Below are positions 16,723 to 48,250 of a stretch of 64,000 bases of DNA, one piece after another. Position 1 is the stretch's first letter, and every line of letters begins with the position of its first letter. Below the pieces are notes generated by a model, which was given only the letters and a program-made list of their open reading frames with translations, made no database searches and had not been told where the DNA came from. The stretch is from Bigelowiella natans CCMP2755. Its lineage: Eukaryota > Protista > Cercozoa. The DNA lies in the NCBI GenBank assembly GCA_000320545.1, contig ADNK01001335.1:13846-77845 (forward strand). Direction: 5' to 3'. The translations under genes and the position numbers were made by a program.

Positions 16723-17405
16723 ATGACAGGAGGCATGATATCGCAATACGTTTCCACGCCGTCTCTAATTATTTACAAGGACCAGCGGTACCTCATTATG
16801 GACGCTCCCACAGATGCTAACTTAGACGAGTACCTAAAGGTAATAAATATAATTATCTAGATGCTGAGTAGCGTAGTGGGTTTGAAGGATTACTAGAGAG
16901 GACAAGGGTAAATCTATGAGAAACACTGAAAATATTGATTTTAACCATTGAAGGAGTTGAAAAACGAGAACGTAACGGTTCTCGTTCGAACCTGCGAGCC
17001 TTCATACTCGGTGGAAAAGCTTACACGGGCAGGAATCACAGTCAAAGTAATTATATGATTGATGCATATAGTTTTGCTCTAAGAATCAATTTAATAACTT
17101 AGGAATTGCCCTTTTCTGATGGGGCGCCACCGCCCACTGAAGTTGTGAACAAATGGCTTGGGATTGTAAAGGACGTTTTTGAGAAAAAAGGCGAGAAAGC
17201 AACCATTGCCATCCATTGCGTTGCTGGGCTCGGAAGAGCACCTGTTTGCGTTGCAATAGGACTGATTGAAAGAGGAATGGATCCTGAACTTGCTATCCAA
17301 GAGATTCGTAACAAACGTAGAGGCGCAATCAATCGGCGCCAAGCAAAGTTCCTATTCGATTATAAGCCCAAAAATCTGGCTCAAGGCTGCTGTGCTGTCA
17401 TGTAG
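16723..17405 (+). CDS. PTP4A: PRL/PTP4A-family prenylated protein tyrosine phosphatase (exons 16723-16839, 16954-17046, 17103-17405)
   Basis: YLIMDAPTDANL, VLVRTCEPSY, FSDGAPPP, catalytic HCVAGLGRAPV, RRGAIN and C-terminal CCAVM CaaX box; phase-0 GT-AG introns. Confidence 0.95.
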
Positions 17406-17970
17406 TGTGAAGTAATCAGAAGGTAGCAAGTTGCACATAGGGTTCACCAAGAGGAGTATGTCATCAGAAGAGTATTCTCCAATAAGGAGAAAATATACTG
17501 TTGTGGGAGTCGCTGATTTTTGCAGGTGATCTTCTAGGCCTTGGGCATGGGGCATTGACGACTTTTTGATTATTTATATATTCATTCAATTTTGGTCTAA
17601 TTAATGTTGCGGCAACCGATGATTATAATCAAATGCATCACCACCGTTCTTGGCTGACGCAGCGTTTATTACATGCGCATAGCGACCCCTAGGACCGCAC
17701 AATATATATGTATATATATACATATATACAGGGGGGTTCCACAATTTGGTGCGGATTCTGACTTTTTTCTGAGAAATTTTGTGCAGTCTCAGGCGGTGGC
17801 GCTTGCGCCGCGCGAGCAACGTGACAAGCAACATGGAGCCCCATGAGGCTGCACAGCGCGTAGTTGGGATGCACACTTTGTTCAATTCTGTGTCAGGTGT
17901 TGGTGACACACATCTTCTAGATTTGTTTGCCCACATCTGTTCACATCCGCACACTTTGCCCACAATCGTG

Positions 17971-19925
17971 TCATTCGTAATCGGTGCTGCTGCTGTCACT
18001 GCTAGCAAGCTCATCGCCAACCTCACGCACTGCTGCGTCAATCGCGTGGTCTCTTTCCGACAATTTCATGAGCTTGTTCTTCATCGTCATTGCCATGATC
18101 TTGTGAAGTTTTTTCCGCTTGCGAGCCTTTCGTTTCATCTTGCGGTGCACCTGTTTGCGCAACTGCTGCCTGGTCTGTGGATGCCCTCCGCTGCAACAGC
18201 ACCTGATGCAGCGACCGCATCCGATGCAGCGCTTGCAGTTCTTGTGACAGCTCAGACCACACGTCCCTGTGTGGCAGACCTGCTGCGGCGGCGGGGCATC
18301 TGTGCTGTCGTCCGATCCACACTCAAAGCCATCAACATCGTGTGCAGCGCTTTTGCCGCCTCGACGGGCATTTTTCTCACCGCGAGCATTGGGCCCCGCC
18401 TTGCTGACCTGTGTTGCCTTCGATGTGCCCAGCTTGGGCGCTGGGACGCTCTGCTCAGTCGCGTTTTCTGCAGATTGCGTCGATTGTGCCTCCATGGCTG
18501 CCACTCGCGCCAGCAGTTGCTTCACCATGCGCCCACTTTCAGCACAACGCTCGTTCGCTGCTGCCAGCTTCCTCTCGCACTCCGCCTTGATGCGCGCGGC
18601 GCTTTCGTGCTCATCATCCTCACTCTCAGTGATGTCGCATGCCGATTCCGACTTTCGGCTCGCCGCAGCTGCTGATGCCCCGCCACGCCGTGCAGCCCTT
18701 CCTTTTTTTGACCTCCTTGTGTTGCGTCCTCCGCCATTCCTCCTCTTCTTGTTCTTCTTCTCTGACGGCTGGTGGACCACCAAAATTGGATCATTCTCGC
18801 TGTCGCCCTCGCTAGGCACGCTTTCCACCTTCTTTGTCGCGTCCTGACTGGTGGCTGCTGCGTCCGGCTTGCGCAGCTCGTCCACCCAATTTCTCAGGGC
18901 GTCGTCCACAACACTCAGGCAGCTGCCAGACACAAATGCGGGGGGCTGGTTGCTGTGACCTTCGAAACTGGCGCCAGTTTCCTGAGACTCCCATCCAGAG
19001 ACAGCATGGCAACTTGCAGGTGGGCACTGGACCTGAACGTCTTTTTTCGATCCATGAGAATTGATCCCATCACCCACTTGTTTCTGATGTCGCCCTCCTT
19101 CGCCATCATTGCCTTGGTCGGCTTCTCAAAGGTTGCGAGTTGGCATCTTGACACAGAGACAGCGTTCTCTGCGTGTGCCACGCCGGCAAACAGAACGCAC
19201 TTCCCCACTGACCACCCGCCATTGCCATCGTGCAACCGAATCGTGCGGCTTCTTCTGGCACACGAATTGCAGTGTGCCAGCACTTTGCCTTCGTGGTCAC
19301 GCAGAGAGTCTGGAAGATTGTGGCTCCGCCTCCTTGCTGCGCAGACACGGTGATGAATGATGATGAACAATGAACAATGAACAATGAACAAAACATGGTC
19401 ACACACATCACGTGTGTGCACATGTGCACACGTGTGCACACGTGCATGTGCGCATTGCACACCTTGACTTCCCACAGCCGGCGCCGACTCATCATTGCTG
19501 ATCTTCTCATGCCCCTCGAGCCACATTTCAGCGCCTTCGATGTTTCCGATTGAGCAGTCGATGAGCGATTCGTCCAGTTGAAGCTCCTTCGTCACCTCGA
19601 CAGGTGCTTTTTTCATCTCATCATCCGGAAACAGCCAGCGAATTGCCTCAGGTTGCCTGCCATTTCCATCGTCTTCAATGAACTGCTGCATCGAAACATT
19701 GCCCCACTTGAGCCCAAGTCCTGCCTGGGTGAGGCTTTTCGTCGCCACTGTTGCCTCGAATGGATTCTCTCGGACCGGCTCTCCCAAAAACTCAGACCCG
19801 AAGGCCGTGAGTTCATTCGAAATGCGCAATCCAGCCCCGATGATGCGCCCGGTGTCCTCTTTCAGCAGCACAGGGATGAAGTTGTCGCCCACAATCTCAT
19901 CATCAAAACAGATTCCCGCGGACAT
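17971..19925 (-). pseudogene. Second, divergently oriented gene of the element (unknown product; Cys-rich and acidic/basic C-terminal part), TpA-hypermutated
   Basis: Overlapping protein-like frames 18915-19925 (MSAGICFDDEIVGDNFIPVLL...) and 17971-19077 (with C..C-rich CHTGTCGLSCHKNCKRCIGCGRCIRCCC); an intron-like mutated microsatellite at ~19340-19462. Confidence 0.45.
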
Positions 19926-20030
19926 TGGCCACGATTTTTCCCGCGCTTTTCGCGGCTGAAGCCGGCTTTTGTCTGCCCAAGCAACAAGTGCAACAACTTC
20001 TGCTCAATGTTGCCAAATGCACTTTGTGGT

Positions 20031-20190
20031 TTTGGACACAATCCATCAACAGTGAAGTCGCAGGAAAATGATCGCAGTCAGAACAGTCTTGCGACCCTGC
20101 GAACACAGTTTCCACATGCAATCCATCCACAGCAGAGTCGCAGGATGACAATCGCAGTCAGAACAGTCTTGCGACCCTGCGAACACACTC
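20031..20190 (+). repeat. 80-bp-period direct repeat (2 copies) in the element's intergenic region
   Basis: ATCGCAGTCAGAACAGTCTTGCGACCCTGCGAACACA is identical at 20071 and 20151; flanking parts align with TG/CA swaps. Confidence 0.9.
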
Positions 20191-20622
20191 ACAAACACCT
20201 GTTCGACCCCTTTCGTCTGCCACGGAGTGTCCACCCTGTGCCGCAAATTGAGGGACCAACACGAGGTGCCCAAAAAATCAAGGGGGGGAACCCCCCTCTT
20301 GGAGGGGGGTTCCCCCAAGCCTTGAACCCAAATGCTGATCTGCTCGCATTGGTGATTTGGGTCAAATCTCGCTTCCCAACCCCGCTCGAGTGGTGCAGGA
20401 CAATCACCATCAGCTGTGCGAGTGGCCACCTTGCTCCACAAAGGGAGTGCGACGGAGTTGCAAAAAAAGTTGAGGGGGGAACCCCCCTCCAAGAGGGGGA
20501 AACGCGCCCATTGGTGATTCACCAATCTCGCTTCCCAACCAAACCCGCTCGACAAGGGGCGTGGGCTCTCTGACACTGACGCGAATTCCAAGCCTCCGTT
20601 CAGGCTGATCTGACTCGAACAC

Positions 20623-23406
20623 GTGCACAGGATGAGCGCATCGTGCTGGTGGGGCGCGGAGATTCCACGGCGCGGTCGTGATGTCGATGATCGACCTGCT
20701 CCAGGGAGCTGGTGGGGAGGCGTGAAGCATCTAGCTGATGCCAGGAAAAAGGATCCTCTCCCAAGCGACGTTGAAGTGCTCGAGGCGGTGTCAGAGCCTG
20801 TGGGCAGCTGGTGGGGAATGGGGGGGGGTGGTGATGGCACGGCCAGTGGCAATGCATCCTTGGTCAGCACACGTGTGCATGCGCATGGACTCGCAATGCA
20901 GCATGTGCAATCATGTGTGTGCATGCATGTGCACACACGTGCAGGTGCGTGTTCATCATCTTCAACGCCGCTCGTCGAGACGCCAGCTGACGACGACAGC
21001 AAATGGCAGTGCGACAGGTGCGGGCCAGAGTTTGTGACAAGGAGCGGGTTCACGCGTCATCCTCGGAATGGCCCTTTGTGCACCGAGCGGAGGACTGGAA
21101 AAAAAGCACATGAACGAACCAGAACTCGCCTCAATGGGCAACAGACACTCAAAGTGGCGCGCGTGTTCGTGCAGAGAGTGTCTGAAGGCTTGACCCAGCA
21201 CGAAGCTGCCCTTGCGGTGGGGCATCGATCATCACAGTGCACAAAGTGGATGCAACAGCACGGATTGGGTTGGCGGCCGAGCGAGAACACGTGTCTCCAG
21301 CCGCTCTGGAAGCGGCTGGGCCGCACTCATCGAACACCTGCGACAAAAACAAAAAACCTTCGTGGCGGCGCTGGGCGGCCATTGGGAGAGCCCCTGTCCT
21401 CCCACGGAGCCGTCCTCCTCTCCGCAGACAGTGAGGTGAAGGCCTGGCCCTCAAAATGCAGCACACGACTGGTGCTCGACCAGTTCGAGCACACTCTTGC
21501 GACTCAATGCGGCTTCCTTTGGCACGGCGCAACCCACGAACAAAAGATTGCCAAGGTGAGGCGACATGTGTGTGGCCCAGAGAATCCGTCCAGCTCGATC
21601 GAAGGAAAAGTTGTGTCAAACGAGATGCAGCGCTTGCCACGCGTTGCAACTGCCGCACATCTTCAACAAGAGGCGGTGAAACGTGCAGCGAGAGAAGCTG
21701 GCACAACATCCTGGCGGGATGGACTGGATGGAGTGGCCGCAGTGGATGAGTGCGTGATTGATCAATCGGGCTCTGTGAGGAGAGAGAATTCCGCTTGCAC
21801 GCGGGGGAAATTCGTGTTCTGGACTTGCATGACAGGCGGCTCGGGAGGACAAACCGTTTTCGTGATCTTGGTGCCAACGCAAAACAAACGCTTGCAATGG
21901 ACACACGAGCAGATTCACGAGGGAGCAATGCTCCACTGCACCGATTGCAGATTCGTGAACACCAAGATTCACAGTCGATTCATGCTGCACTTTTGCCCAG
22001 TCACAGAGCGGAAGGAAATTTTGCTGCATGACAAGGCGTCGTGTCATTCGTCGAAGCTGATTGAGTTGATGACAAGATCAACTGGACGCGCACCGGTGTG
22101 CCCTGACATTGGAGGTGCAACAGCCTGCGCTGCGCCACCAGATGGACCCAAAGCACATGGAGCTTTGAAGAAAAAATCGACATCTCATTTTTGCAATTTT
22201 TTTGCGAAACTCTTCCGCGAGGCGAAAGCCAGGGGTGAGGAGCATTCGCAACTTCCAACCATGACCGCGCAGAACTTGGCGGACTTCCTGAGCTCAATGA
22301 TCAACAGAGAATGCACTCCGAGAGTGACGAGAGACGCAACATTGTCATGCATGCCGATCACAAACCACCGCGTTGACTGTGACACTCGCCACAAAAATTT
22401 GCGTGAGCTTGTGGATGTCACACACAGGGAAGCGGTGGAGAACAAGACTGCGCTCGAAATCAAGGTGAAAAGGCACACGTGCAGCAGATGTGGACAACAG
22501 CACTGCTCTCCGGCCAGCATTGCCGCCAGGCAGCACGAGAATGAGGCATTGGGTGAGTGCCACATGCTTTTGAAGAGAATGCCTGTCCCGTCTTCTCGGT
22601 TGGGAGTGACAATGGTCCCGCCATTCAAGGTTGTGTGGTGGGAGAAAACCGACGACGAGAGGAATGGCGAGCTGGCACGCAGATCAGCAGTGCATCAGAG
22701 AGAGCTGAAAACAAGGCCGGGTCATTGGCGCGTGAAGCACGAGGGCGAGGCAAAGTTCCACACACGCAAATGGACGTGCAAATTGAGGCCACCAATCACG
22801 TTTGAAATCATCTCCGAGGATGACAACAGCAGCAGCGCACACAGTGACGACTCCTCAGACGCACCACCAGCTCCACCGCGACCTGCAGCAGAGCTCGAAG
22901 CCGGCAGCAGCAGCGATGGCGACAGCAGCGACGAGCCACTGGTGGCTAGAGGCAGGGGCAGGCTAGCAGCAGGAAGACGCATCGCAATTTCCAGCAGTGA
23001 CGACGAAGAGGGATCGGAAAGTGAGAGCAGTGCCCCTCCCGAGTGCACTGAAGATGAGCTAGACTGGGATTGGCCTTCCCCTGACAAGCTTCCAGACGGC
23101 GAGTTCTTGACCATTGAGGACGCTCGCGGCGCATCCACTTGGGTGTTGTGCGCTGCGAAGGAAGATGAAACGTGCGCTTGCGTGGCTGCGAAAGGCCGAA
23201 GAGTGCCAAACAATCCAAACGTGTCGAAGGAAACCGTGCTGAAATTGAGCGTGGACGTGAACCCTGCGTGCGCTAGAGCCACTTTGAGATCCAGGTTTGC
23301 TCGCAGCACGATGCTGGTCATCGTGTTCAGCAGAGCATGCTGGAGCAGCAAACTGACCAATCACCCTTGGATTGTGTGCACGTGCAAGAGCCCTGCATGC
23401 ATGTGA
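20623..23406 (+). pseudogene. Hypermutated pogo-like DD36D transposase with C2H2-like zinc fingers and HTH
   Basis: KWQCDRCG..F.TRSGFTRH (C2H2-like); HTH-like QTLKVARVF...EAALAVGHRSSQCTKW; AAVDE (first Asp); ILLHDKASCH (second Asp); GGATACAAPPDG (third Asp, 36 residues later, cf. pogo 'GG.T...QPLD'); second finger RHTCSRCGQQH. No Tyr in 927 codons. The ORF probably reads through a former intron. Confidence 0.75.
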
Positions 23407-23873
23407 CATGCATGGACTCTGCACGCAACACATGCATGCACACTCAGGCTCTTGGCGTGCGGAACCAATGGATGAAATGATTTGCAAAACCCATCACTCA
23501 TGCACAGATGACTTCAGGTGTTGGGTTGGTGTGATTCGAATTGCGGGTTCATGAGAAGCATTGAATGATGCATCCTTGTGTGCATGAGATGATGTGTGCA
23601 TTCTCAAAATTCATGTTGTGCATGCAAAAAACAAGAAGAATGCATGCCCGATCTAGAAAGAAAACATGCAAATGCAAAAAAAGCCAATTGTGTGTCATGC
23701 ACTGTCTGTCCATGTGAGTGCGTGCATCTCAGACATTGCGGACAATGCACATGCTTTGCGATGCTTAGGAGCATGTGAGTGCACTTTGTTCAATGTTTGC
23801 TTTGGCGGTACACGTGTGGAAAACGCACATGTCAAATTGGTGGGTACGTCTGCAGAAATTGCTTCCACATCGC

Positions 23874-23924
23874 AAATTTTTCTGAAAAATTTTTGCACAT
23901 CGCAAAAATTTTTCAGAAAAATTT
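23874..23924. repeat. Perfect 23-bp inverted repeat with 5-nt loop near the right end of the element
   Basis: AAATTTTTCTGAAAAATTTTTGC-ACATC-GCAAAAATTTTTCAGAAAAATTT. Confidence 0.95.
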
Positions 23925-24049
23925 TCCGCGTCTGCACTGTTCTGTAGATCACACATCGTATACATATCTACACACAGAATCAGGCTTCATAGCGCAGGGC
24001 GCACATTGCAATTATGCAGCGTATGGCTGTCATTAGAAATCGTGCAGCC

Positions 24050-25260
24050 AACAGCTAGTAAGCCTAGAAGCTAGCTAACAGCGGTTGAAGAGATTCAGAG
24101 CTCTCTGTAGCTCAGAGAGCACTGCTAGACTGTTGACTCTCTATCGTAGCATCGCTAGATCGTACGGCACATTTATTTGATACGTTGCGTTTCAACACAA
24201 TTTCCATGCTAGCACATCTGACACAATGAGTGCTGTAGTCGCGGCTTTGCACAACCATGTTAGGACTAGCTAGCTAGTTAGCTAGAGGATGACAATTGAA
24301 CAACTTTCAACTCACATCTGCTCAATTCATTAGTGTTCATTGCATCCTTCTCATTGTTCCCATCTAGCCATCTAGCTATAGCTAGCTAGCTAGCTAGCTA
24401 GCCATGCTAGCTGCATAGCATGCTAGCATGTATGCTAGATCTGGAGAGCGTAGCTAGGTAGCCATACAAAATTGCACTGCATTTCATGGCTAGGCGGCTA
24501 GCTAGCTCCGTCACAGAGCTCTAGAGCTAGCAGGCCTGCTAGCTTGCTCACACTGGCTAGCTAGGCCTGCAGACGACATGTACGAAGACTCATATCTTTA
24601 GATCTGCATGTATGTACATCTGCCCCACGCGCACAGCAGGCACAGCAGCAAGCTACTGCAGCTGTGCGAGTGTCTAGACATGCTAGCACACAGTAGATGT
24701 ACGTAGATGTGCTAAGATGCGCGTGCACACCTGCTACTAGACTACTACTAGACCTAGCTAGCTAGCCTACATGCTAGCATGCTAGTAGCGTGCTGCTAGC
24801 TAGCATCGAAACCGAAACTCGCTCTACGAGTACATCGTAGCTCTAGCTAGCTAGCTAGAGCTAGCCAGAGCTACTAGCTAACAGCTCTAGAGCTAGACAG
24901 ACGTACAGCTAGCTAGCTAGATGCAGAGCTAGAGACTGATTGCTAGCTAGCTAGACGACTGCACATATTCTAGCAATGGCTAGCAATGCTGGAATGCATG
25001 CAGCACAACAGCACACATCTAGCTAGCTAGACATGCTGTGGACATCGCTAGTCATAGCAAGCTAGATCGCCTGGTCGATCTGTTACAATGTGGAAATGTG
25101 GACTACGATACATGCTAGCATGCAGACCTAGCTAGCTAGAGACATCTAGACGTACTGGCGCGTGTGCATTGCGACTAGCTAGCTAGCTAGCTAGAGCATT
25201 CTACGTTACTAGATCTAGCTAGCTAGAGCTGCATTGGACAACTGAAGCTAAGATGATTTA
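24050..25260. repeat. CTAG/AGCT-saturated low-complexity tract
   Basis: About 70+ CTAG counted by eye in 1.2 kb, with (GCTA)n runs; no ORF. Confidence 0.9.
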
Positions 25261-25586: not shown

Positions 25587-28500
25587 TCAATTATAGTATC
25601 TCTGAAATTCAGAATTCGTATCGTACATAGGATTCGCATTCTGGTTTATCTGAGGATATCCACCTTGGTATTGGTTTTGACGATTCCATTGTTGCTGCTG
25701 CGCATGAGCAAATTCTTGCTCTCTTAATAATAGCGCTTGTCGCTGGATTTTATCTCTTTTGTAAAATTCTTCTTGGCCTTTCCCGAAATCGAACTTCAGT
25801 TCGTTTGGAATGTTCCATTGGGATGTCTTTGTTTCCTGATTATAACAAGTAATAAGGATAGGACTTATGAACCGAAATGTATTATAATGGCATTACCGTG
25901 TTAAAAAAGAAGATTTTGTAGTTTCCGTCTTGAGTCATGTGCAATTGATACATCTTCAGTCTTTCATTGCCAGCCATCACGTAATTCATGAGAGTGTAGA
26001 GAAATTTATTCCTCAAAACAGACGGTAAATTGCTCAATTCAGGAGATCTGCCATGCAAGAAGAAGAGCTGGCCACCAGCTACAATTAAGTGTAACCATAT
26101 ACTCTTTAACATTGGCATATTGATGCTGTCTAGGAATTGGAAGATTTGTGGCTGCTCCCATTCTAACATTTCTGGGATGCGATTGTTTAATGGCCAATTT
26201 TCTGGAGGGCTTGCTGCAATGATATAATCCTCTGGTGTGTTGCTGTAAAAAGCATTAATTTGTTGCTGCTGTTGTTGCCGGATGTCTTCCGCTCGTTGTC
26301 GCTCCAAGTCCTTCTCGAAATTCTCTAGCGCCCGTTTTCTCTCCTCCTCATTCAACGCCTCTGCATCTATGTGCTCGAGAAGTAAATTGGGCATATGGAA
26401 GCCATTCATCCAGTGGTTTGGTTTCAGATCGCCTTTTCTCTTCATGGCCATCTTTGCAAGGGCAAGTTTCGCCTTCCATATTTCTTGCTTCCGTAGATTT
26501 TCGTTTCGAGTTTCTTCATCCTCTTCTTCTTCCTCCTCCTCCTCCTCCTCCTCCGATTCCTCCTTCATTTTCCCCTTTCTACTCGATCTTCTAGAAGACT
26601 TTTTCTTTTTGCCGGCCTTGGACTTGGACCGAGTTAGTCTCCTGCGTCTGGGCGTGGATTTCAGTTTTTTCTCCATTCTAATGTATGATTGGTATTTCTT
26701 TAATGCGGCCAAAGCATCTTTTTGTTGCTCCATGTTTCCATAGCGTGCTAGAACAAACCACATAAGTGATCCTTGCGGAAGCTCTTTCCGACAATTTTCG
26801 TATGGGTTATAGACAGAGCTCTTTGCATCAGGTCCAATTCCGGCTGCAGCGCTCAATGCGGCTATAGTTTCTGCTGACAGTTTAGATCCTGACGGCGAGG
26901 ACTTTTTATCGGCACCCAAAACCTCCCCGTCGCCACTTTTCTCTGCCTCTTTCTTACCGGTCTTGCTCTTCTCGTCTTCCATTACCATTTTATTTTTAGA
27001 GATTTTTACGCTAATTGAAGCAGATTTGTCGTTTTCCTGACCCGGTTGCCAAGCCCCGTCAGCTTCTATTTTCTCCATTTCATCTAAAATCTTTTGCTCG
27101 CTTTTCGAAGCAATCGCCTCCAATGTTTTCTGTTCCTCCTCTGTGACTTCTGCATCTTTACTGCTTTTTATTGCGTCGTATTTAGTCATCGGAAACTCAC
27201 AGCGGTAGAGATCTTGCAAGTCGGTTGTCTGGAATACGCGCTGGACTTGTTTCTCATCCACGACCCGTAGGGCCAATCCACGCTTCGTCAGCTGCCTTTC
27301 ATATATTTTTTGCTCCATCGTGTCGTGGGATACGAGTCTGTAGACATACACATTCTTCTTCTGCCCAAATCGATAAATTCGGAATATTGCCTGCAAATCA
27401 TGCGATGGGTTCCAGCTGCTGTCGAAAATAATTGCGTGATTCGCACCTACTAGATTGATTCCCAAAGAGCCGGCCTTCGTAGACAAGAGAAATACCTTCT
27501 GTTCACTATCAGGCTTATTAAATTCATCGATGTCCTTCTGTCTGACATCACACTTGATGGAGCCATCGATTCGGAAGAAGTTTTCATTTTTATAATAATC
27601 CAAATGCTTTTCCATCGCCGTTTCCAAGAGATCGAGTGTGAGTAGACTTTGAGAGAAAATAATGACTTTCTCTCCTTGAGCTATTATTCTTTCCATAAGT
27701 TCGATCGCAACTTGAAATTTGGGCCCTGTTGTTATGTTGAGATCCAGGTCTTCTTCATCTTCGTCTTCATCCTCATTTTTTGGTAGGATGCTTTTGAACC
27801 AGTCGTGTTTCAATCCATTTTTCGCAACACCATGCATAATTGCGTCTATCTTCTCCCTTTTCTTCTGCAGCTGCAGCTTACGTTCTTCTGCTTTTGTTTT
27901 CTCACGCACTTTATCTAAATCGTCATCGAGCATAGCGTCTTCATCCTCGTCTTCGTCATCATCATTGATAAAAAGATCCAGCATAGCCCTTTCCTTCTTT
28001 TGATTTTGCGTACGATACCATTCCTTGTAAGCCAATCGAATTATTTGTGGATGATTCCATATCTTATTGAGTGAGTGATAGTCTTGGAACAGAGACCTAA
28101 AGTTACTAGAAATCAGACGATGCATTCTGGATGTAATTAACCAATGCTATTATTGTGTTAGTGTTCAGTTGGACCTTCTCGTAATATTTCCCAAGTAATG
28201 TGCATACAGCTGTTTTTGAAGAGGTGAGAGTGAAACAAACAACGTATAGACGCTTTTTTCTGGCAATTCGTGGGCGATGTCTCTATACCCTCTCCTATGG
28301 ACAAATGCCTGAACTTTGTTGTGAAGAACAAACGCTCGTTCACGCATAAGCCTAACGTCATCTGCATTACTATCTACACATTGGCCATTGAGGATCGGAG
28401 ATTCAAAACGATTACGGAAATCCTTCGGAGTCCCCAAGAAGTTTGGTCGTACAAAGTCGATCATGAAAAAGTACTCCATCAAATTGTTCTGCAGTGGTGT

Positions 28501-30480
28501 GCCAGTGAGAATGACTCGCCGCTGTGTTCCGATTTGGCTCAGGACTTTCGACAGACCCGTCTTAGAATTTTTAATTCTGTGTCCTTCGTCAACAACAACC
28601 AGATCTGCCATTTCTAGGAGTAAGGACTGGAATCTGTCTCTCATTTTCTCTTGCACTCGCTTGCCCTCGCACAAGTTTCGAATCATTTCATAACCAATAA
28701 TTAAGACCCCCCCTTGCCTTCGCCACTTTTCAAGAGCTCTCAATCTAGCCTTGTTTGAACGCATAACTTCTGCCATACTAACGATGCTTGGACGTTCATC
28801 TTCGTCGAGCCATTTTTCAAACTCAGCTTTCCAGTTTGTGAGGACATTAACAGGACATATTATCATCGCCAATCGGCCAATTCCACTAGCCAGAAAAGCT
28901 TGAATAATTGTTATGGATTGGAGTGTCTTTCCTAGCCCCATTAAGTGGGCCAAGATACAACCAGTGCCTTCTGAGAGAGTAACTACGTTTTCCTCCTCAT
29001 CTTCTTCACTCGAGTCGCTATTTCCATCTTCATCCGTTCCCTTTGTTTTCTAAATTGCATAGAGTTCAGGCTTTATCTAGGTCCTATGAACATAAAAAAT
29101 ATTGCTGCTACCTTTTTGTTGTCTTTGATATCGCATATGTTGCTCCAGATGAACCTGGTTCCTGCAATCTGATGCTTCTTGAGTAATTTTCCTATGGTTG
29201 CCGCTGCGAATACGGGCTCTTCAACTTTGGAGTGGTATGGGTTCAAGCACATCTTCTGTTTGTTCTTATTGTACTTTGCCCCTTGAGCCTTGTACTTCTC
29301 CTCCCTATCTTTTAATAATTCCTGCCGATACATCTGAAGCTTCATAGCCTAAATTTGATTTCAACTTAGGGTACAACTTTAAACAAAATTTGCTGAAACT
29401 GACCTTTTTCGTCTCCTCGTTCAAATCTTCGTCGTCAAGTATCTTATTGATATTTCGTCTGTACTTCCCCTTCGGTTTGTTCACATCTGATTTTCTCTCC
29501 TTCTTCTTTTTTTTTTTCTTCTTCTTTCCATATTCTCTCCAATCTTTCTTGAACGAATCCAGCTGCTCCGGAGCACATACAAAGCATTTCCAACTCTCAG
29601 CATCTTCGTATTTCTTGAAATATTTTTCGCCCATGTTCCTGCGGATAATTTCCGGCTCATATGCTCGAGGGCAAGTATCACAAACCCACAAGTCATCACC
29701 CTTCTTTGCAGACCAGCGGCAATAGTTATCATGGCCGTCCTCGTCTTTTGGCCATTTGCATACGTTATACTTTTTAATACAATTTCTGCATATTGCCGTT
29801 TGGAGGAGAGGATGCTGGTACATGAATTTGTCGGTGTATTGCTTGAAACAAACTGTGCACGGGTATCTCTTTTTTTCCTCCTTGACCTTGACCTCAGATT
29901 CTTCACTTTCTGCTTCAGATTTCTCCGCAGAATCTTCCCCAGAATCGCGATCATCATCATCATCATCATCGTCAGATTGATCTTCCGAATCTTCTTCATC
30001 GGAATCAATTCCAGATAGACCTTCCGAGTCTTCTTCATCGGAGTCAATTCCAGATAGGCCTTCCGAGCCCTCTTCATCGGAGTCAATTCCAGATAGACCT
30101 TCCAAGCCCTCTTCATCAGAGTCAATTCCAGATAGACCCTCCGAGCCCTCTTCATCGGAGTCCTTGTCATCGCTCTCACTGTCGAAAACTTTATCGTCCT
30201 TATCTTTGTCCTCTTCCCATTTTTGTCCTTTACGTCTTGTCATCGTTAATCGCTTAGGGGCCTTCTTCTTTCTGCCGGATCTCCTTGGTTTTGCCTCACT
30301 ATCGTCCTCGTCGGAACTATCTTCCGAATTATCTTCTATGTCCTCTAGCCTATCGCCTTTTTTTTTCTTTCCGCCCTTCTTTCGATGCTTTTCCTTTGAC
30401 TCAACCTCTGATTCGTCGTCAGATGCCTGACAGGATATTGCTTTCAATTTACAAACGTTGACCTTGATGATTCCAGCACA

Positions 30481-30522
<42 letters not shown>

Positions 30523-30644
30523 TACACACTTCTTCTGCCTAATCAGCTGTGTACTGTTCAACGTTATTGAGTAGATTTCAACATTTTTTGATAACGATGT
30601 GTCTATGCGTTAATGAAATACATATTTTATGGATATATGTATAA

Positions 30645-30680
<36 letters not shown>

Positions 30681-31585
30681 CAATATCGTCGTCGACATCG
30701 TTGGATCCGTCATCTTTGCCTTTGTGACGCCGTGTCTTCCTTGATATCTTCTTCCTCTTTTCTCTTTTTGAACGCTCGGCTTTTTTCCTTTCCTTTGACT
30801 TTTTTGAAGTTTTACGTTTCTTTGACTTGCTTCCATCGTCATCATTATCTCCTTCATCATTTTTATGTTTTTCTCCCTTCTTCTGTCGTTTCTTCGATCG
30901 CTTTGGTTTCTCTTCCTCTTGCATGCTGCTGTCGTCATCAAATATGTCTTCATCGTCTTCGCTCATTGCCTTACCGGTGAGCTTCATCGTTCTTTTGCGC
31001 AACTCCTGCTGATATTTTCGTTTCAATTCTTTCTTAATTTGCTCAAGCTCTCTTTTGCCAAATCCCTTTTTCTTTTTGGATCTTTTGGGCTTCTTGCGCC
31101 TAACTTCGAATTCAAAATCACTTTCATCCCCCTTTCCATTTTTCTTGCCTTTCTTGCTTTTCTTGGGCCTCATTATTATTCGGTAACCTGAGTCAGAACC
31201 AGAATCCTCGTCTGAGTCCTCGTTTTTCCGTTTACGTTTCTTTTTCTTGTTGGTAGTCTTGGTCTCCTCTTCAACGCTATCATCCTCAATTCCATCTTTC
31301 TCTTCGTCATCGTCCAAATCAAAATCCAATTTATCACTATCATTATCGTCGCTATCATTGTCAATCTCATCGTTGGATCCATCACCACCATCATCATCAT
31401 CGTCGCCGTCGACATCATCTGCTTCATCAGCCTTTCCTCTTTTTGAACGACGTTTCTTGTTGCTACTCGCCGACTTATTGTCATCATCCTCATCATCTTC
31501 TTCATCGTCATCTGAGAGCTTAAATTCCTCGAAGAAAGCATCGTAGTCGAAATCGTCCTCCTCGTCCTCTTCCTCTTCCTCTTCT

Positions 31586-31616
<31 letters not shown>

Positions 31617-31806
31617 TTTTCCCCTTCCTCTTAGAACGCCTTGACGATGTTACAGCCTTACCCCGAGCAGGTTTTGGAGTGCTGGATTGTCTTTTCCTGA
31701 TTGACTTCCGCACGAAAAGTGGACCACGCTGTTTCTTGTCATTAGAAGATTCAGAATTTTCTCGGTTCTTACTCTTAGCCGCCCGGCGAGGGACACGCCT
31801 CGGCAT
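25587..31806 (-). CDS. ATRX: ATRX-like SNF2 chromatin remodeller with ADD domain, multi-exon
   Basis: ADD-like CTVC...HPLLQTAICRNC...DEDGHDNYCRW...VCDTC...RNMG...WKCFVC; ATPase motifs GCILAHLMGLGKTLQ, VVVDEGHRIKN, LTGTPLQNNLMEY, FSQS, FRIDGS, LLSTKAGSLGINL, WNPSHDLQAIFRIYRFGQKK; acidic/basic N-terminus; last exon ETKTSQWNIP...QRYYN*. Confidence 0.92.
29990..30161 (-). repeat. 39-bp in-frame tandem repeat (~4 copies, DSDEEGSEGLSGI) in the ATRX-like gene
   Basis: Repeated TCTTCATCGGAGTCAATTCCAGATAGACC-like units on the + strand. Confidence 0.9.
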
Positions 31807-32664: not shown

Positions 32665-34302
32665 GAGATACAAATGCCGATCACCAATACGAAGACCTTA
32701 GCTCGAGAAGAATGGCCGCCCGATGCCAAGGAGCAAAAGTTACATGAGAATGCCTATTATAATTGCGTCTCTGAGTCACAGGTGAATTTCTGGTCCCCCC
32801 CCTCCAACCGAACACCCATGTGGGCGATGGAGTTCTTACTAGAATATGTATACATACCTCTTCAGGAGACACAACCACCAATTACTACTGCGAATGTGGT
32901 AGTCAGAGAAGGGGGCTCGCCCGATGAGAAAGAGGAGAATCTACGTGAGGAGGAGAACCCCTATTTGCATTGTGTCCCTGCTCCAAAGGTACAATTCTCA
33001 ATATTAAAAATGACGGTGCGTCTTTTGAACATGCCCCACCCACACGCACTCACACACGAACTTTCATAAAATATTTATTCGATACTGCTCATATTGAACT
33101 CGAACGTGTCCAGGTGTATACAAAGGAACGGAGGAAAGAGGCGCAACAAAATGAGGAGGAGAAGAGAGGCCGTTTTGTTTATCACGTTGACGAGGTCTTA
33201 TTAGGCAAGAGTCTCGGGGGTGGCAAATTCTCAACGGCAATGGCTGGTGTGATTAAATCTACCGGTGAAAAAGTCGCTGTAAAGCTCCTGAAGAAGGACA
33301 CAGGCTACAACGATTATAAACGGGAGATGCGAAACCTGCTCGACGTGGACCAGAATCCGCATAGAAATATCTTGAGATTTGTCGGGATCATGCCTCTGAA
33401 TGGTATGCAGTGTTTCATAACAGAGTGGTGTGAGCTTGGGAGTTTGGACAAGCTGCACAACAAGTTCGATCTGACGGAGAAGAAAATGTTCTTCAAGATT
33501 GCGCACGGAATTTTCTGCGGAGTGGGACATCTCCACGCCAACAACATGGTAGCAGTGAGGATTGGGAGAGAGAGGGGGGGGGGGGGGGGGGGCATGGAGA
33601 GGGGGCTACAAAAAAGATAAAAAGCCTTGATTTATATTTATCGAATTGTCTTCCTGCTTGAAAACGGCGCATATATATAAATACATACATACATATAATA
33701 ATAATAATATATATATATATATATATATAGATTCACAGAGATATCGCCTGCCGCAATTTGCTCGTGAAAAACGACTTCGAAGTCGTAATCGCCGATTTCG
33801 GCCTCACCGTGAGGGCTCCAAACAAAACTTACAAAGCTAGTCTCGCAGAGCGCCTTCCATGGCGCTGGACGTCCCCCGAGACCATGGCGTCTGGAATTTT
33901 CCGCTTCTCTTCGGATGTGTGGGCCACGGGGGTGACGCTATGGGAGCTCCTGAGTAAGGGCTCAATTCCGTTCCTGGCCGCACGTGGACCGCAAGAATTC
34001 AGGGAACTGTGGCAGTCTGGAAAGATAAAGATAGAAGTGCCACCATCCCTTGGCTGGGCGCTCGATGTGCTCAACTGTTGCCTTCATCCTCTTCATACGG
34101 GGAGACTCAAGCTGTCGGAGGACACTTGGCTGGACTTCGTAGCTGTAGCAGCAGCAGAGAGAGAGGATGGGGGTAGTGATCAAGCGAAAGCTACCAACAG
34201 CAGTAGACGGAATATTTTCACCGAGGAAGATGTTGATAAGCGTGCGAGCCAGGCGGTGATTTTAGAGAGAAAGGTTAGAGCATGTTTATATCTGCTACAT
34301 GG

Positions 34303-34339
<37 letters not shown>

Positions 34340-36389
34340 TTGAGTTCACGTACGTGGTTCGCTTGTACCTCTGCATGTATACCACAGTTCACGTACGTGG
34401 TTCGCTTGTACCTCTGCATGTATACCACAATAACATAATAGTGGTTTTGTCCACAGCTGTTGTATCCATCCATCATCGTTTGTCCTTCCTCTGTAAATAT
34501 TAGAAGGAGAAGGAAGAAGTGATTAAAATCGGAGGTGAACGAAACGGAAACTTTAGCAGTAATGCCGAGAAAAAAGAGGGGAAGCAAGAAGGTGGAACTC
34601 TATTATCCAACCGGCTTGATGAGCTCAAAGAGATCCAAAAAAAAATTAAAAACCTTAAGAAGTCCGACTACTCGCTTCTCGCTTCGATTCCCAATCCCTA
34701 CTCCAAAAATATCTACAATATGGCGAGCGCTGTTTGCATATTGCTCGGAATACAACCGACCGTCAAGACTGACAGTACGGATAAGACTCTCAGAGATTAC
34801 TGGGACGCTATCAGGCCGAGAATCAATCTCACGGAAGAACCCAGCCTCGTCTTTGCCCGGGTACCTGGTCTCAAATATATGATGCAGGAGCAGCTATCGA
34901 AATATCATCTCGGGGTACTCATGTATGCATTAGATTGGAAAAATTTGTCCCCCGCCACAATTAAGGCTCTTAGGCCATATGTGGAGGGGGGGGGCGAGAA
35001 AAATATTTCGATAGAAAAATGTCGGCAAAGCAACCCCTTGGCTCATTTATGCTCCAGATGGGTGTACGCTATGTATAGAACTGCAGCAGCAGATACGACG
35101 ACGATGCAGAGCAGCTTTGGTACTACTACTCAAATACTAATTTGATATATTCGAAATCATGGATGATACACAAGTAGGATCAACATTACCCATTACTTTA
35201 CTTGGAGGGCGGGGCGAGGGGGTCATGTGTACCTGCGCGCTCGTACAATGTTCCGACGCCAAAGTTAGAATGATCATGGGTCTAACTCTTTCCTCTTTCT
35301 CTTCACTCTTCGCGTCTTCTTCTTCTTCTTCTTCTTCTTCTTCTTCTTTTCCTTCTCCTCCTCCTCCTCCTCCTCCTCTTCCTTTTACATGAATCCACAG
35401 GTGAGATTGATGACCATTTCATCGGTCCCACGTTAAAATACGTCCCCGGTGGAGATGTGAACGGGCTATGGCCTCGAATCAACCGCTTCTCAGCAGCGAG
35501 GAAGGCTAGCTTTAACAATGCGAAGATGCACATTGTCAGATCGGGAATAGGAGCTCTGAAAAATCTTGAAGCCCTCGATCTTACCGGAAATAACCTAGTT
35601 AGTTTACCAGCTCAGATCAGCTTACTGTCCATGCTCAAGGTTCTCAACCTAAACAACAACTACTGTCGCCACCTCCCCCCGCAAATCAAATCGCTGTCCA
35701 AGCTCACAACGCTCCACCTCCAGCAAAATAAGCTTTTAAGCCTGCCGCTCGAGATCTGCACCATCCCCAGCCTGCGGGGTCTATACCTTCAAAACAATTG
35801 CCTTCAACAACTACCTGCTGACGTGCAGGTGCTCCGTAACCTCGAGCGGTTGAGCCTGGAGAATAATCAATTGAGAAGCCTTCCGTCTGAGGTCAAGGTT
35901 CTCTCGAAACTACACTGGCTTCAACTAGACAACAACTCCTTGAACAGCCTCCCATCGGAGGTTGGATTCTTGGAGAATCTAAATGTATTAAGCGTCGATG
36001 GAAACCGCCTTACAAGCCTGCCAGAAACTTTCAAGTTACTTCAGAACCTCAGAGAACTCAGCATCGCGGACAACAATCTGCCAACATTTCCGCTGCCGTT
36101 GCTTTCCCTCCATAAGGTCAGCCATTTATGTCTCGATGGAAATCGGATTTCAAGTATCCCAGCTGAGATTCGGACTCTCACTTGTCTGCAAAAACTAGCT
36201 TTGGAGAGAAACCTTCTCGTAAGCTTGCCTACAGAGATGAGCTCTTCGCCAGATTTGATTTTGGGGGGGATCCATGTGGATGGGAACCCGGCTCCGGAAA
36301 AGGAGCTCACAAAAAATATATCGTTCAAGCTTGCCAGGCAAAGATTAGGAAAGCTGCTGGAAACTAGCTCAGACGAGGAGGAAGATTAG
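32665..36389 (+). CDS. Tyrosine kinase with dynein-type microtubule-binding domain and LRRs (probably one spliced gene; 5' start uncertain)
   Basis: LGGGKFS, VAVKLLK, IHRDIACRNLLV, IADFGL, LPWRWTSPE, SDVWATGVTLWE. Phase-0 intron 34274-34503 joins the MTBD-like exon (AVCILLGIQP...DYWD...LCSRWVYAMY). Phase-1 intron 35120-35400 joins the 23-aa LRR exon (LxxLxLxNNxLxxLP). Confidence 0.75.
34343..34427 (+). repeat. ~43-bp tandem duplication in an intron
   Basis: AGTTCACGTACGTGGTTCGCTTGTACCTCTGCATGTATACCAC occurs twice. Confidence 0.85.
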
Positions 36390-36399
36390 CCGAGGATGA

Positions 36400-37950
36400 A
36401 TTGATGCAAGACGACGATCACATGCAAACACGACACTTGGCAATGTGCATGTGGGTAACTGCAGCCATTTCAGCTGTCAAGTGCACAAACATGCGAACAC
36501 CAACAGCTCAGATTGCGAAACCAATTGAATGCCATCATGAATCGAAATGATGAGATGACATTGCTGACTGTGCAGCTGAAAAAGAAGCAAGGACAGCTAC
36601 GCGCACTGCGTGACATCGACTGTGGAACACACGTGCTTTCAAGCGCATGAGACGCATCGCAAAAGACTTGATTGCTTCATTGTATCCGTCTCACACGTGC
36701 AGAGCCAGCGCATCAGTGAGGAACATTGTGTCCAGGTGCACCTAGACGTGCGTTGGTGCGCCGCTGTGCCAGTGACAACCCGCAACAATGACATCTCGTG
36801 CAAGTGCTGCTTGGGTGACTGCAAACGCTGTGTGTTCCGTTTTTGTTTGAGTCAACAAGAGTGTGGAACGTGGTCGACGGAGCGACCTCGTTCCCAGCCG
36901 AACTCCACGCGTGCAATGCCCCATCAGGAAGCGGTCTTGTGTCTGTGATGCATTGGAAGTTGTGATGAAAAACAATTGGTGCAACAGCTGACAGCGCCCA
37001 CAATGACGCAAGCTAGCTTTGCAAGGAAAAATTTTCAGCACGATTGTTTTTGTCAGCGCTGGAGCGGGTCGCACATTGATGGATTGCACACAGATGTGCA
37101 TCTTGCTCAACTCCTTTTCAAACCTTCTTCGCAATGTGTGCCATGACGTTCATCATCGCGCTTTGCAAAGTTTGGAGAAGCCTCGAGCATGTTGCATCGG
37201 GGCTGCATGCAACAACGAACAATGATGATGGTGGTGGTCTCAAACGCAAAACTTGCCCTTCCTCCATTGCATCTTTTGCACGTTCTTGTGTTGTCAGCGG
37301 CACACATGAGTGTGTTGCCATGCGTCAGATCCAAAGATGTTGACCCAAGTTTTCCGTGCCAAGACATGCATGCATTTGAGGTGCGACAAATGCCCTGAAA
37401 GGTTGTCGTGAGTTTCATGCGGCCACAAAGTGGGGCGTGCCACGTTTTAGCGGCTGCAGTGATGCCATCCATGGCCATCCATGCGATTTCTAGATGACCA
37501 GATGAGCACATCATGCATCATGAAATGACCGAATGCGCAAGTGCCTTGCTTCTGTGGATCATGTGCTAGTGTGGCACAATCTAGCAATTGCTAGCTGCGT
37601 GCGCGCGGAAAATGAATCGAATCAAGCATGAGAACCAACAAAACCAGAGTCCCCTCGCAATGTCATTTTGCAGCGCAACATCTGGAACATGTGCTGAACT
37701 ACGTGACGTTTGCGCGGACAGTCGAATCGCAAAATGAGCAGCCAGAAGCGGGCATGCTGTTTTGCACACGCATGGCAGCAGCGGACATGCAGTGCTCTGG
37801 ATGCATATGTAGATGCACAACAGGGACAAAGCTAGACGCACAGACGGTGCCGTGTGCCTACATCAGGTTGGACAAGACATCATGCAAGCCATGCCTCTGG
37901 GAGTGCTAAGACACGTGCAAGAATCGAGCTCGGCTTTGAATAGAAGCTAA
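36400..37950 (-). mobile_element. Degenerate TpA-depleted transposon relic, possibly MULE/Mutator-like
   Basis: Strong TpA depletion with CTAG retained. Minus-strand fragments HLEIAWM, PTLW and ICRTSNACMSWHGKL resemble the 'Y.E..W...P.LW...RTNN..E.WH..L' region of MULE transposases; frames are broken. Confidence 0.5.
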
Positions 37951-38099: not shown

Positions 38100-41000
38100 T
38101 CACGATTTTTTCTTCCTACCGAACAACAGCCCCCGCATTATCCCCGAGAAAGACCTTGAACCCCGCCTATTGCCGCCAACAATTCCGCTCCCTTTCGATT
38201 GTAGCTCGCCACCGGACGTCGTATTGATCTCTGATGAATTCTCCAGAACGGGGCTTAATAGACTGGAGTGTTTAGCTCTGGCTTCTCTCTCATGCCGCAA
38301 AGAGACCCCCGTCTGCTGCAACGCGGTGACAAACACTGAAAACCCGGCTAGAATATCGGCTTGGGGAAGCAGAAACAATTTGACGTCGCCGGTAGAATGA
38401 GCAACTAAGCAGTACTGTTGGTTCTCTACAAACGCCAAAGCCGTAATTTCAACCGGTGCTGCTGCTGCTGCTTCTTCTTCTCTATCCGACATAATACCTA
38501 ATTGGGATGATGCACGAGACAAAACCACAATTGCATACCGAATCATTCGAAAGCATAACCCCATTCTCACCAGTATGACATACCGGCGTCTTCTTCCTTG
38601 CCAGCGCCCACCTGTCCACCATCGTTGTCACCACCAGTGGGCTTTGTTGCTCCTCTGTCCCCTGCCCCTCCGCTGTCACCAACCCCTTCCCTCCCGTCTG
38701 TGTTGCTTTTCGCTGACTGCTGGCCTGCTCCATCAGAACCAACCATGAGACCTTGTTTTTCCTCAATATCAAAATCCTCAATCTTTTCACCCCAAACCAA
38801 CAATCACGAATAAAATCACAACTTCTCTCAACCCCCACCCAACTACCTGATAAGGGCTGCTCGCGTTTAGAGTCCGAAGCACTGCTACCATTTAAGGAAG
38901 ATTCTGGTGACGTCGTTGCTATAGCTTGAACTATGGAAAGATCCCAGGACTGAACAGCGACAAGAAAACACACAGTAATTGGGTCGGATTCTCAGGGCTC
39001 CTTCCCCACATTTTGTGCTATAACCCCACCCCCCACCCCTCGTCCACCCCCCTTTTTTTTCTTGAAGGAAACGGAAAAAAAATCACGAAGCTCTGTCGAA
39101 GAACGACAAAATCGTCGGCGCGTGCTTGTGTGTCCGGTTCTCATGCATTTTTGAAAACGTTTCCTCCATTACACATTACAGCAAATTGAGGAAAATTAAG
39201 TAAACGACCGATCGGATGGATTGCATACACGAATGAGAGAAGGAACGAATACATGGATAAACGGACAAATCATTACCCGGAGGAACACCAATTCCCCTGC
39301 TGGCATGCCACAGCCGATGAAGTCTCCCATTGGTGATATTTCTAGGGTGCTAACAAAGGCGCCCATCCCTCTCGATGCGATTTCATCACCCGCAGGAGAG
39401 TAGAGCACCAGTGTTTCCTCGGCGCGAATATTGCTGCTGCTACGGCTGCCGCTGCCTTCCTCCTCTTCTAAGCGCTCCACACTACTACCGGTGCTGGTAT
39501 CCGGGGCGGCGATCGGGACGTATGATACCAAGATAAATGTAAGGTTGTTCCTTGTAGAAATCAGCCTAACCTTCATCGCAGTGAGGGTTTGGGACGGCGG
39601 CCGCACCAGCCGCATGCAGCGCCCTTGATAGGTGGAGTAAATGGCGAGGCAGTTGCGAGAGTAGGACGAGACGCAAGAAGAATCATCACCACCACCTGCA
39701 TCAGTACTACCCGCCCACCTCTCTCCACCCTCCTCCTCCCTCCCTCCCCCCCGGTCCTCCCACACCTCCCGCTGCAGCGCGCGAGAAACGCCTATGCTCA
39801 CGCCAATACCAGCCCTCATGTTGATATCGCAGTCGACTACAGGGCCTTCATGCACTCGAAATCGGGCGAAGGGCTCCAAGCTGATGGGACTCCGTCGCCA
39901 CTCGTGCTTCTTCACAGCGGTGTTCCACAGGCACACACACCCCGCTCTATCGCCAGAAATGATAGCGTTTTGCTGCAAGGCCAGCCTGAGCGTGGAGACC
40001 ACGCCCAGGTGCTGATTGACCTGTGACAGCAGCATTACCCGCTTGCGATCGTTGAGATAGCAGCGGAAGCTGTGGTCACGATACCCACCGACGAATAAAA
40101 AACGCGAGTTTTTGCTCAGCGCCACGCACTGGGATAGGCGCGGCGTCGGAGATGGTCCTGATCGCGTCGCGGCTGGGGAAAGCCATGCAGGACACGGCAG
40201 CAGCCTGTCGCTGCCCTCCATAACGAGAGGCCTAGCTTCAGAACTCCTGCGGTTTTGCTTCGTGATTAAGCTGAACAGGCCCGCGACGGAGAAACGCGAC
40301 GACGATGACGAGGAGGACGCGGACGATGATGATGGCGACATCATGCTGCCGCTGCCGAAAGCGGAAGCCCTCCTCATGCCCCCCGGGGGGGTGGGAGCCA
40401 TCACCAAGTTGCTGTTGTGCGCGAGCATCGGAGAAACAGCTGATGTGTTGGTGCCCGTCTTGCTCTTTTCCGGAGTGCTAGGACCAACAGCATCACTATT
40501 ATCCCGGGTGCCGCTGCAGTCATTATTTCCGGACCTCGCCACCGACACCGGATGCAACGAAGAGCGCTTAGCCGCTGGCAGAGGAGGACTGCCTGGCGAG
40601 GAGACTGAGATCGCTGGCGAGGCCGATGGAGACAGCATCATCCTCCTCCTTTGTGGCTTCACGGGGGTTGAGGCGCGCGGCTTGGAGAATCGTTTCGGGT
40701 TCCTCGGGATGGCATTCGGTAGTATACTCGAGTGCCCCAACGACGGATTTCCAGTGAGATTGACCGCCATCTCAACGCACGCATCCAACATCCCTGACAA
40801 CTCGACGCGTCTCACTCTCACCGCTAAGCAGCTCGTTTGGTGAGTCACCGAGCCAGGAGGCGCAGGAGGGGGAGGGAGGGGAGGGGGGGGAGTGGGGAGT
40901 AGAGTAGTAGCTGCAAGGGTGCTGCTAGTGCCAGCTGCAACTCTCCTAGAGGAAGAGGAAGAAGAAGAAGAAACGCTGCCGTTCTTGCTATGATCCCCAA

Positions 41001-46680: not shown

Positions 46681-46714
<34 letters not shown>

Positions 46715-48250
46715 GGAGTGTTTTGACCCTTGCATGTAGTGGTACTAGGATTAGCAGTAGGAGTATTGTTATTTGGACCGATGGTTGGACTTGTAAGGGA
46801 GTCTAGCAAGTCTACCAGCGTCTGCACTACATGCAGCGTCTGTACGTCTGGCTCCAGAGGAGGAAGAGGAGCTGCAGCCCCTCCCTTCTTCGCTTGGCTG
46901 GCGGCTTTAGCACGGTGGTAATTTCTTTGTTGCTGGGTTGCTTTCACCATGAAAACGACCGCGTTCAGCAGCATACAAGCGGCCGATATTTGGCGTTTGA
47001 TCGCCAAACGATATGAGGATAGCTCGGTTTTCAACTTCCCATTCGCCTCCCCCCCCTTCTTGTAATCGCAGGAGGTCGTGGTCGCTCTTTGGTTAGCTCC
47101 TCCTTCTCCTGCAAGAGAAGTAGGAACAGCGCTGCTGCTTGGATTGAACGCCCATGGGGCAACGAATCGCAACCAGTCCAGGGTGCGCACAGGGCCCAAA
47201 CTGTTGGCGAATGCCTAGGTCATCCCGGAAGAGGATCGGACATAATAGATACAAAACAACACGGAACAAACACGGAAACAAGATCAACCAAATTCACGGG
47301 AGAACGAAAAGTTAGAAGGATCCTCTCCTCCCCCCCCCCCCCCCCCCCTCCCTCTCTCCTCTCTCTCTCTCCTTCAGAATTGTGCATCTTCTTCTTCTTC
47401 TTCTTCTTCTGCTTTTTCTCCTTCTACAAGTGCGTCTTGTGTTAAGTATCGTTCACACCACATAAGTCACCTTCGGATATCGTTCCACGAGGCTTTCGAA
47501 TAAACGAAGCAGCCGCAGGACCGACTCGGAAGCCACAGAAGAGGAAGAAGCAGCCCTTGACGCCCGTCCTTTCTTCATCTTCTCACCACTCTTCGTATCA
47601 CCTCCCCCTCCTCCCGTATTGGCACTGGTTGGTGATGAAGTCTTATCTGTCGTGTCAGTAGCGACAGCAGGGTCCTCGCCATTCGCTGGCACCATGCTTA
47701 TCCCTCCTCCTCCTCCTCCTCCTCCTCCTCCTCCTCCTCCGTTGCTGGCGTTGTTCGTCCAGTAGTACATATCGAGGAGGGATATGGCAGCCTCGGTGAC
47801 GTGCACCTTGCTTGGTGTCATATCAAGGGCCTCTATCGCCATTATTAGGGAGGCAACTCCATGAGCAGCAGCCTGGGGGTGAGAAGGAGGGGGGGGGGGG
47901 AGGGGAGGGAAGCAAGATGAGTGACGCTGCGGAGGGAGGGGGGATAGACTGCAAGGCATGATTTCTCAATATTCTACTTTCACACTCCTCCTAGTACTAC
48001 GGCCACTAACATTACTACATATTGCTACTACCTATTACTACTACTACTACTACTACTCCCGACTACTACTACTACTACTTCTCCCTATTACTACTGCTAC
48101 TCCCTCATATTGACCATTGAAGGCTTTGTGTAGTTGAGGAGGGCGGTGCGTATCGGCCTCGGTCCCATGCAGAAATACTCCGTTTGGAAACGAGCATCGT
48201 ATGAAACCAGATCGGATATTAACGATATAGCCTCGCCTATTATGTTCCGC

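Follow-up and report, generated by a model that had tools for sequence, protein, structure and literature searches.

Within the 64,000-nucleotide stretch of Bigelowiella natans DNA analyzed here (the window), one block of about 6 kb has lost almost every TpA dinucleotide, while the DNA on either side keeps them. The locus raises the question of what removed these sites, and by what rule. The block is very probably a dead mariner-type transposon in which the TpA hypermutation known from B. natans has run to saturation and left its scar. The process itself is already described: TpA>TpG/CpA hypermutation has been measured in a mutation-accumulation study of B. natans lines (Mettrop et al., bioRxiv 10.64898/2026.01.13.699255; our statements refer to its main text and to the supplement before Table S10). 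A first-pass annotation of the window had proposed a candidate system while knowing of no described pathway with such a signature; its candidate is the system of Mettrop et al., reported in the same species.

Extent of TpA loss and the surrounding DNA

Between positions 18001 and 23760, we counted eight TA dinucleotides (observed/expected ratio, o/e, 0.03), where approximately 314 are expected at host density. All eight lie within CTAG, at sites from 18002 to 23656 (TA at 18003, 18813, 20732, 22947, 22964, 23060, 23274, and 23654), as the first-pass annotation had described in reporting eight CTAG sites where hundreds of TpA were expected. CTAG makes up 4.4% of host TAs, and the chance that eight of eight survivors would be CTAG is p ~1e-11; at host density, 12.6 CTAG sites would be expected in the core versus the 8 present. 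Over the same interval, the o/e values are 1.59 for TG, 1.48 for CA, 0.84 for CG, 1.00 for AT, and 1.16 for AA. The non-coding parts of the element are as stripped of TA as the coding parts. The 927-codon frame at 20623-23406 contains no Tyr, again as first reported, and none of the six frames of the core retains a TAA stop.

The borders of the stripped region are sharp. An intact (TA)n tract occupies 17703-17728, and TA density is normal again from 23959, in line with the earlier remark that the flanks keep normal TpA and (TA)n. Several TAs outside CTAG are kept in the terminal 200-250 bp (17861, 17978, 23766, 23809, 23845, and 23945), mostly in contexts that change slowly. As judged from these base counts, the TA change is shown to cover the length of the element and to stop close to its borders.

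To the left of the element lies a PRL-type protein phosphatase gene (16800-17405) with a CAAX-like tail at its end, and TA is normal up to the element. On the right, 2 kb from the element, an SNF2 helicase gene occupies 25882-31806 on the minus strand; it encodes acidic repeats and a cysteine-rich finger, and we take it to be ATRX-like. A kinase followed by an LRR region (32970-36389) and a BEACH-domain gene of 2667 codons (39196-47199) both have ordinary TA. After the LRR gene, at approximately 36400-37750, there is a second TA-poor island whose survivors are mostly CTAG, TTAG, and CTAC; it gave no Pfam match and no match to the other sampled loci at E 1e-4. Beside the right end of the element, 24040-25260 is a CTAG-rich tract: CTAG accounts for 76 of its 126 TAs, and the remainder lean to slow contexts. 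This tract, which likewise had no match to other sampled loci at E 1e-4, could represent either a zone in which mutation is incomplete or just a simple GCTA repeat. Clusters of CTAG, smaller than this one, also lie beside the islands L031, L032, L033, and L034.

Identity and parts of the element

The element extends from 17729 to 23958. Contig C474 carries the sole other copy, which has the same two ends but an internal deletion: it matches the window element over 1.5 kb on the left and 200 bp on the right (85-93% identity) and skips 4,514 bases. A TA adjoins each end: the left target-site copy (17727-17728) is the end of the unmutated (TA)n, and the right one (23959-23960) lies where the right-end motif common to L031, L032, and the outside homologue L038 stops. 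The left end given by the first-pass annotation (17729) holds, and its right end (23944) moves to 23958 on the basis of this common motif. The left terminus (17729-17800, plus strand) carries a subterminal TTTTCTGA-AAATTTT motif with an imperfect inverted match to the right end. The right terminus (23856-23958, minus strand) contains a 23-nt perfect hairpin (23874-23924) that is conserved in L031 and L032.

The plus strand carries the transposase. Its main coding part (20947-23406), recognized by homology to the protein P0011 and by a fold match, comprises an N-terminal C2H2-like finger and a predicted DD36D catalytic domain without Tyr, with the Asp codons at 21745, 22030, and 22141. Identity to P0011 is 49% over 823 columns. 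Because homology is limited to residues 109-904 and TAA stops have gone from all six frames, the 927-codon frame, which is indeed open, overstates the extent of the protein. Relatives of the plus-strand protein (37-61% identity) were found only in marine samples and in one MMETSP transcript.

Homology to P0011 begins only beyond a CA/TG mosaic at 20868-20946 (plus strand), probably a former (TA)n tract in an intron that is now read through. Such mosaics occur at 19409-19454, 20868-20943, and 23373-23442, and their composition suggests that they were once (TA)n microsatellites within introns or untranslated regions; intact TA-rich tracts are similarly placed in the homologue L039. The left part of the element (17971-19925, minus strand) contains one or more divergent genes of unassigned function, delimited by open reading frames and one short match (E 4e-6), with the mosaic at 19409-19454 and an AATGAAC repeat at 19356-19392. 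Minus-strand genes upstream of the transposase, in the same layout as in the window, are present in the homologous contigs L039, L043, and L045. A repeat search also revealed an internal tandem pair (20039-20187, plus strand; 69 nt, 88% alike), in which two of the differences are TG/CA swaps, and two G-run/C-run hairpin repeats in the central spacer between the divergent genes (20261-20530). The spacers of the outside homologues L039 (approximately 2290-2400) and L043 (approximately 1490-1900) have telomere-like TTAGGG/CCCTAA runs, where the window has G-run/C-run hairpins. The AATGAAC repeat corresponds to the beginning of a dispersed ~110-bp repeat that is 85-98% alike between loci (L009-L030); the dispersed repeat has a read depth of more than 100-fold, and most of these loci lie within TA-free islands.

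Since Pfam gave no match for the window open reading frames, including the left gene(s), or for the homologues, the identity of the element rests on fold. The full-length protein model was poor (pLDDT 49), and the catalytic-domain model of a homologue (pLDDT 72) was used for the fold search. It matched the Mos1 mariner transposase at E 1e-5, and also Metnase and Sleeping Beauty; the profile match to Mos1 reached only E 0.25. The element has a TA on either side (17727-17728 and 23959-23960; no empty site was seen) and a DDD triad with an RNase H-like fold, as modeled for the homologue. On this predicted fold, it is an IS630/Tc1/mariner-type transposon of the DD36D class. It shares the TA target site, the DDD triad, and the catalytic fold with Mos1, Sleeping Beauty, and SETMAR. 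It differs from the norm of this group in its DD36D spacing, its protein of ~800 amino acids, its zinc-finger-like parts, its extra divergent gene(s), its weak terminal repeats, of which only short, imperfect matches were found, and the lack of a Pfam transposase match.

Membership of the pogo group was rejected. Neither the window protein nor ten homologues had a DDE_1 or CENP-B-type HTH Pfam match, and the spacing is 36 versus DD30-35D; the only pogo-related trace was a sub-threshold zf-POGZ match in P0001. The first-pass annotation had read the catalytic motif GGATACAAPPD as reverting to a more pogo-like GGATAYAAPLD. That reading is not upheld: a tyrosine-rich homologue also has PPD and carries Phe at the supposed Tyr, and the closest folds are mariner.

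Direction of change and the flanking-base rule

Comparison between the copies of the element showed that 19 of 32 two-base differences are CA<->TG, the pattern expected if ancestral TAs are resolved on either strand, copy by copy. In other TA-free repeat families, CA<->TG accounts for 98 of 267 such differences, counted over pairs that are not independent. The outside homologues keep TA (o/e 0.46-0.93); they are relatives of ~50-60% identity, not the ancestor, and all comparisons with them are pairwise. When L038 is aligned with the window, its 53 aligned TAs correspond to CA in 23 cases, TG in 15, CG in 3, and TA in none. At the protein level, 20 of 27 aligned Tyr residues of L038 are replaced by His (13), Cys (6), or Arg (1). 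Where both flanks are conserved, an A after T is changed to G in 31 of 36 cases, versus 12-27% after other bases. Within the reach of such sequence comparisons, ancestral TA is shown to have become TG or CA, on one or the other strand at each site and independently in each copy.

These results bear out the earlier proposal that a both-strand TA>TG/CA mutator acted on transposon DNA. The copies are 85-93% alike rather than near-identical, and the element is nearly silent, with 13 RNA reads falling on its 6 kb among 625 million letters (6% of one RNA run), which does not fit a family of uniform TpA-free copies with an active transposase. Inter-copy differences are enriched at ancestral TpA, and TG/CA traces to TA, not to CpG.

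The preprint provides the corresponding measurements in living cells. For two viral inserts the mutation rate is ~6e-7 per site per generation, 1000x background, and the changes are almost only TpA>TpG/CpA. Hypermutation was reported in 11 of 15 lines and arises de novo in mitotically grown, clonal lines; the larger insert, the main target, is single-copy and silent. Mettrop et al. further list 324 TpA-depleted CDS, among which DDE and reverse-transcriptase domains are overrepresented, and 124 TpA-depleted clusters, leave DNA transposons as targets at "potentially", liken the process to RIP, and propose an ADAT2-like deaminase with Bn78255 as the candidate. The window element has in common with their system the species, the TpA>TpG/CpA change on both strands, the long-term scar, and the enzyme hypothesis. 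The active regions of the preprint are viral and far from saturated, whereas the window element is a saturated transposon. By the preprint's measure of TpA depletion the element qualifies over 5.8 kb, with TA at 0.03 and CA+TG at ~1.53 overall, the latter near the cut-off; TA is changed to both TG and CA on both strands, and the target is mobile DNA, by its predicted transposase fold, with single-copy read depth, as suits a system whose targets need not be multicopy. With viral inserts as the active targets in the preprint, the term "transposon-restricted" used by the first-pass annotation is unsupported. One NCLDV capsid gene is present in the B. natans genome.

TA survival by context was sampled from ~40 kb of TA-free islands at ~25 loci, which were reached via a common repeat, not at random, and differ in dose. 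Survival was 0.6-1.0 for CTAG, 0.12-0.19 for CTAC/GTAG, 0.13-0.17 for CTAA/TTAG, 0.06 for GTAC, and 0.01-0.03 for the others. Graded flank models outperformed CTAG-only protection by 35-48 log-likelihood units, and the latter was rejected. In the best graded model, a 3' G slows the change and a 3' T speeds it, with the 3' G effect inseparable from a 5' C effect in the survival data. Some window CTAG sites are CCAG or CTGG in the C474 copy, and CTAG is therefore slowed, not immune. Survival counts of this kind show that flanking bases grade the rate, CTAG being roughly at least 10-fold slower. Copy pairs and composition lean towards TAG as the slow strand.

Table S2 of the preprint was counted by hand. 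On the A strand, scaffold 10 has 67 events at TAT, 67 at TAA, 52 at TAC, and 20 at TAG; de novo TAG is ~0.45 of expectation, with availability taken from only 3.5 kb of viral region plus host DNA, whereas the fossil data point to a more severe slowing (0.05-0.06). On the same scaffold, A>G at TAG occurred 3 times versus 17 for T>C at CTA (p 0.003). Of the 210 de novo A:T>G:C events that we counted for the large viral region, 206 are at TpA and the other 4 at ApT; transversions are absent. The preprint text puts all events on TpA; the four ApT events (T>C at ATG/ATT) compare with 0.04 expected. In our homologue comparison, A>G before T reaches 31%, versus 13-16% before other bases. These counts point to ApT as a weak second target. 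The main text of Mettrop et al. does not discuss ApT events or flank effects, and neither it nor the supplement before Table S10 mentions CTAG and sequence context; the graded flank rule and the ApT target are a modest refinement beyond that main text. Many of the de novo insertions listed elsewhere in Table S2 are short ACA-rich pieces.

Candidate mechanisms and comparison with RIP

In the explanation that we prefer, a host TadA/ADAT-type deaminase would turn the A of 5'-TA into inosine. Chromatin or RNA marks, not repeat pairing, would guide the enzyme to silenced foreign DNA, and replication in the host, which is haploid (PMC12730881), would fix G. A single hit would remove TA on both strands and lead to saturation. 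The predicted outcome is the loss of all Tyr codons and TAA stops, a rise in GC, and an inactive transposase. A>G and T>C are indistinguishable from sequence. The chemistry of the enzyme is something that we infer, and the whole adenine deaminase route stands at about even odds when set against a modified base and an error-prone polymerase. The genome contains six matches to the cytidine/adenosine deaminase family, which speak for the presence of the family only. Since ADAT2 is a universal tRNA enzyme, its presence adds little to the case for deamination. ADAR acts on RNA and favors a 3' G, whereas the B. natans process is slower where a 3' G follows. TadA/ADAT, ADAR, APOBEC, and the B. natans process all share transitions of the deamination type with a preferred 5' neighbor; for ADAR and TadA the favored neighbor is a 5' U/T, as Mettrop et al. 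also state.

A modified base could leave the same scar. The A at TpA would be methylated and then deaminated or miscopied, or the T would be oxidized and mispair with G, and CTAG would carry another mark or a bound protein. RIP follows the logic of methylation and then deamination, which such a route would mirror. The ApT events and the A>G excess before T described above fit this explanation, as does the survival of CTAG above the prediction from the de novo TAG rate in the preprint. However, protection of CTAG alone was the poorer fit by the 35-48 units given above, and a Tet/JBP search of the genome, run with no positive control, returned no match. We regard a modified base as unlikely.

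An error-prone Pol eta-like polymerase might also misinsert at TA while copying or repairing silenced foreign DNA. Pol eta causes A>G at WA, with TA favored, and in the homologue comparison A>G is slightly in excess after A (0.27 vs 0.12-0.15). The WA signature, with A>G at AA as well as TA, is not what we found: AA is not depleted (o/e 1.16), and the de novo events counted from the preprint are confined to TpA and, in four cases, ApT, with no transversions. A polymerase origin is distinctly improbable.

Fungal RIP produces block-wise, dinucleotide-specific transitions on both strands that cripple mobile DNA, and its features include the RID methyltransferase and premeiotic timing. The process seen here resembles it as a block-wise, dinucleotide-specific, both-strand transition hypermutation of mobile DNA. 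The chemistry is opposite: RIP changes C>T and creates TpA, whereas the B. natans process removes TpA and raises GC, and C:G>T:A change raising TpA was not found in the element. RIP requires paired duplications and a sexual cycle, whereas the B. natans process hits single-copy DNA in the clonal lines of the preprint.

A true mirror of RIP would have pairing between repeated copies as its trigger. Some repeated DNA occurs in every TA-free island sampled, and a second copy of the ends of the element exists; the island-repeat association is, however, built in, as the islands were sampled through a repeat. The central 4.5 kb is fully mutated, with no second copy in the assembly (91,405,885 bases, 3,736 contigs) or in the reads, and searching the genome at the protein level turned up no further copy of the transposase. 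Read depth over the transposase is single-copy in three DNA runs, and the main target of the preprint is single-copy as well, which leaves the "repeat-targeted" action proposed by the first-pass annotation unsupported. That a single-copy stretch has been mutated in full speaks against pairing as the trigger, although copies may have been lost, and we consider such a trigger very doubtful. In the three DNA runs no new change was seen at the residual TAs, only paralogue differences; few target TAs are left.

Virtually no weight can be given to intrinsic composition, to the arrival of a TA-poor element by horizontal import, or to CpG decay: TA is mildly scarce in most coding DNA, homologues included (0.46-0.6), but the homologues keep Tyr and TA, non-coding DNA is equally stripped, CpG stands at o/e 0.84, homologue TA, not CG, maps specifically to TG/CA, and the CA<->TG doublets between copies together with the TA and Tyr comparison to L038 led us to reject both composition and CpG decay.

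A defense role for the deaminase-type process that we favor is plausible. The process would be a eukaryotic genome defense with the reverse chemistry of RIP, already reported with direct mutation-rate data in B. natans by Mettrop et al. To that report the present locus adds proof, from its copies and from homologues, that the process truly targets DNA transposons, and it shows the saturation of single-copy DNA. The flank rule is something that a candidate enzyme must reproduce in vitro. More tentatively, and with some doubt on our part, B. natans may have a dedicated DNA adenine-editing defense that acts on all silenced mobile DNA without the need for copies. The flank rule, under which TAT changes fastest, a 3' G and probably also a 5' C slow the change, CTAG is nearly exempt, and ApT is a weak target, would then be the fingerprint of some deaminase, or some base mark, distinct from the housekeeping ADAT2. 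If true, this fingerprint could be used to identify the enzyme, and a natural DNA adenine deaminase would interest base-editing work.
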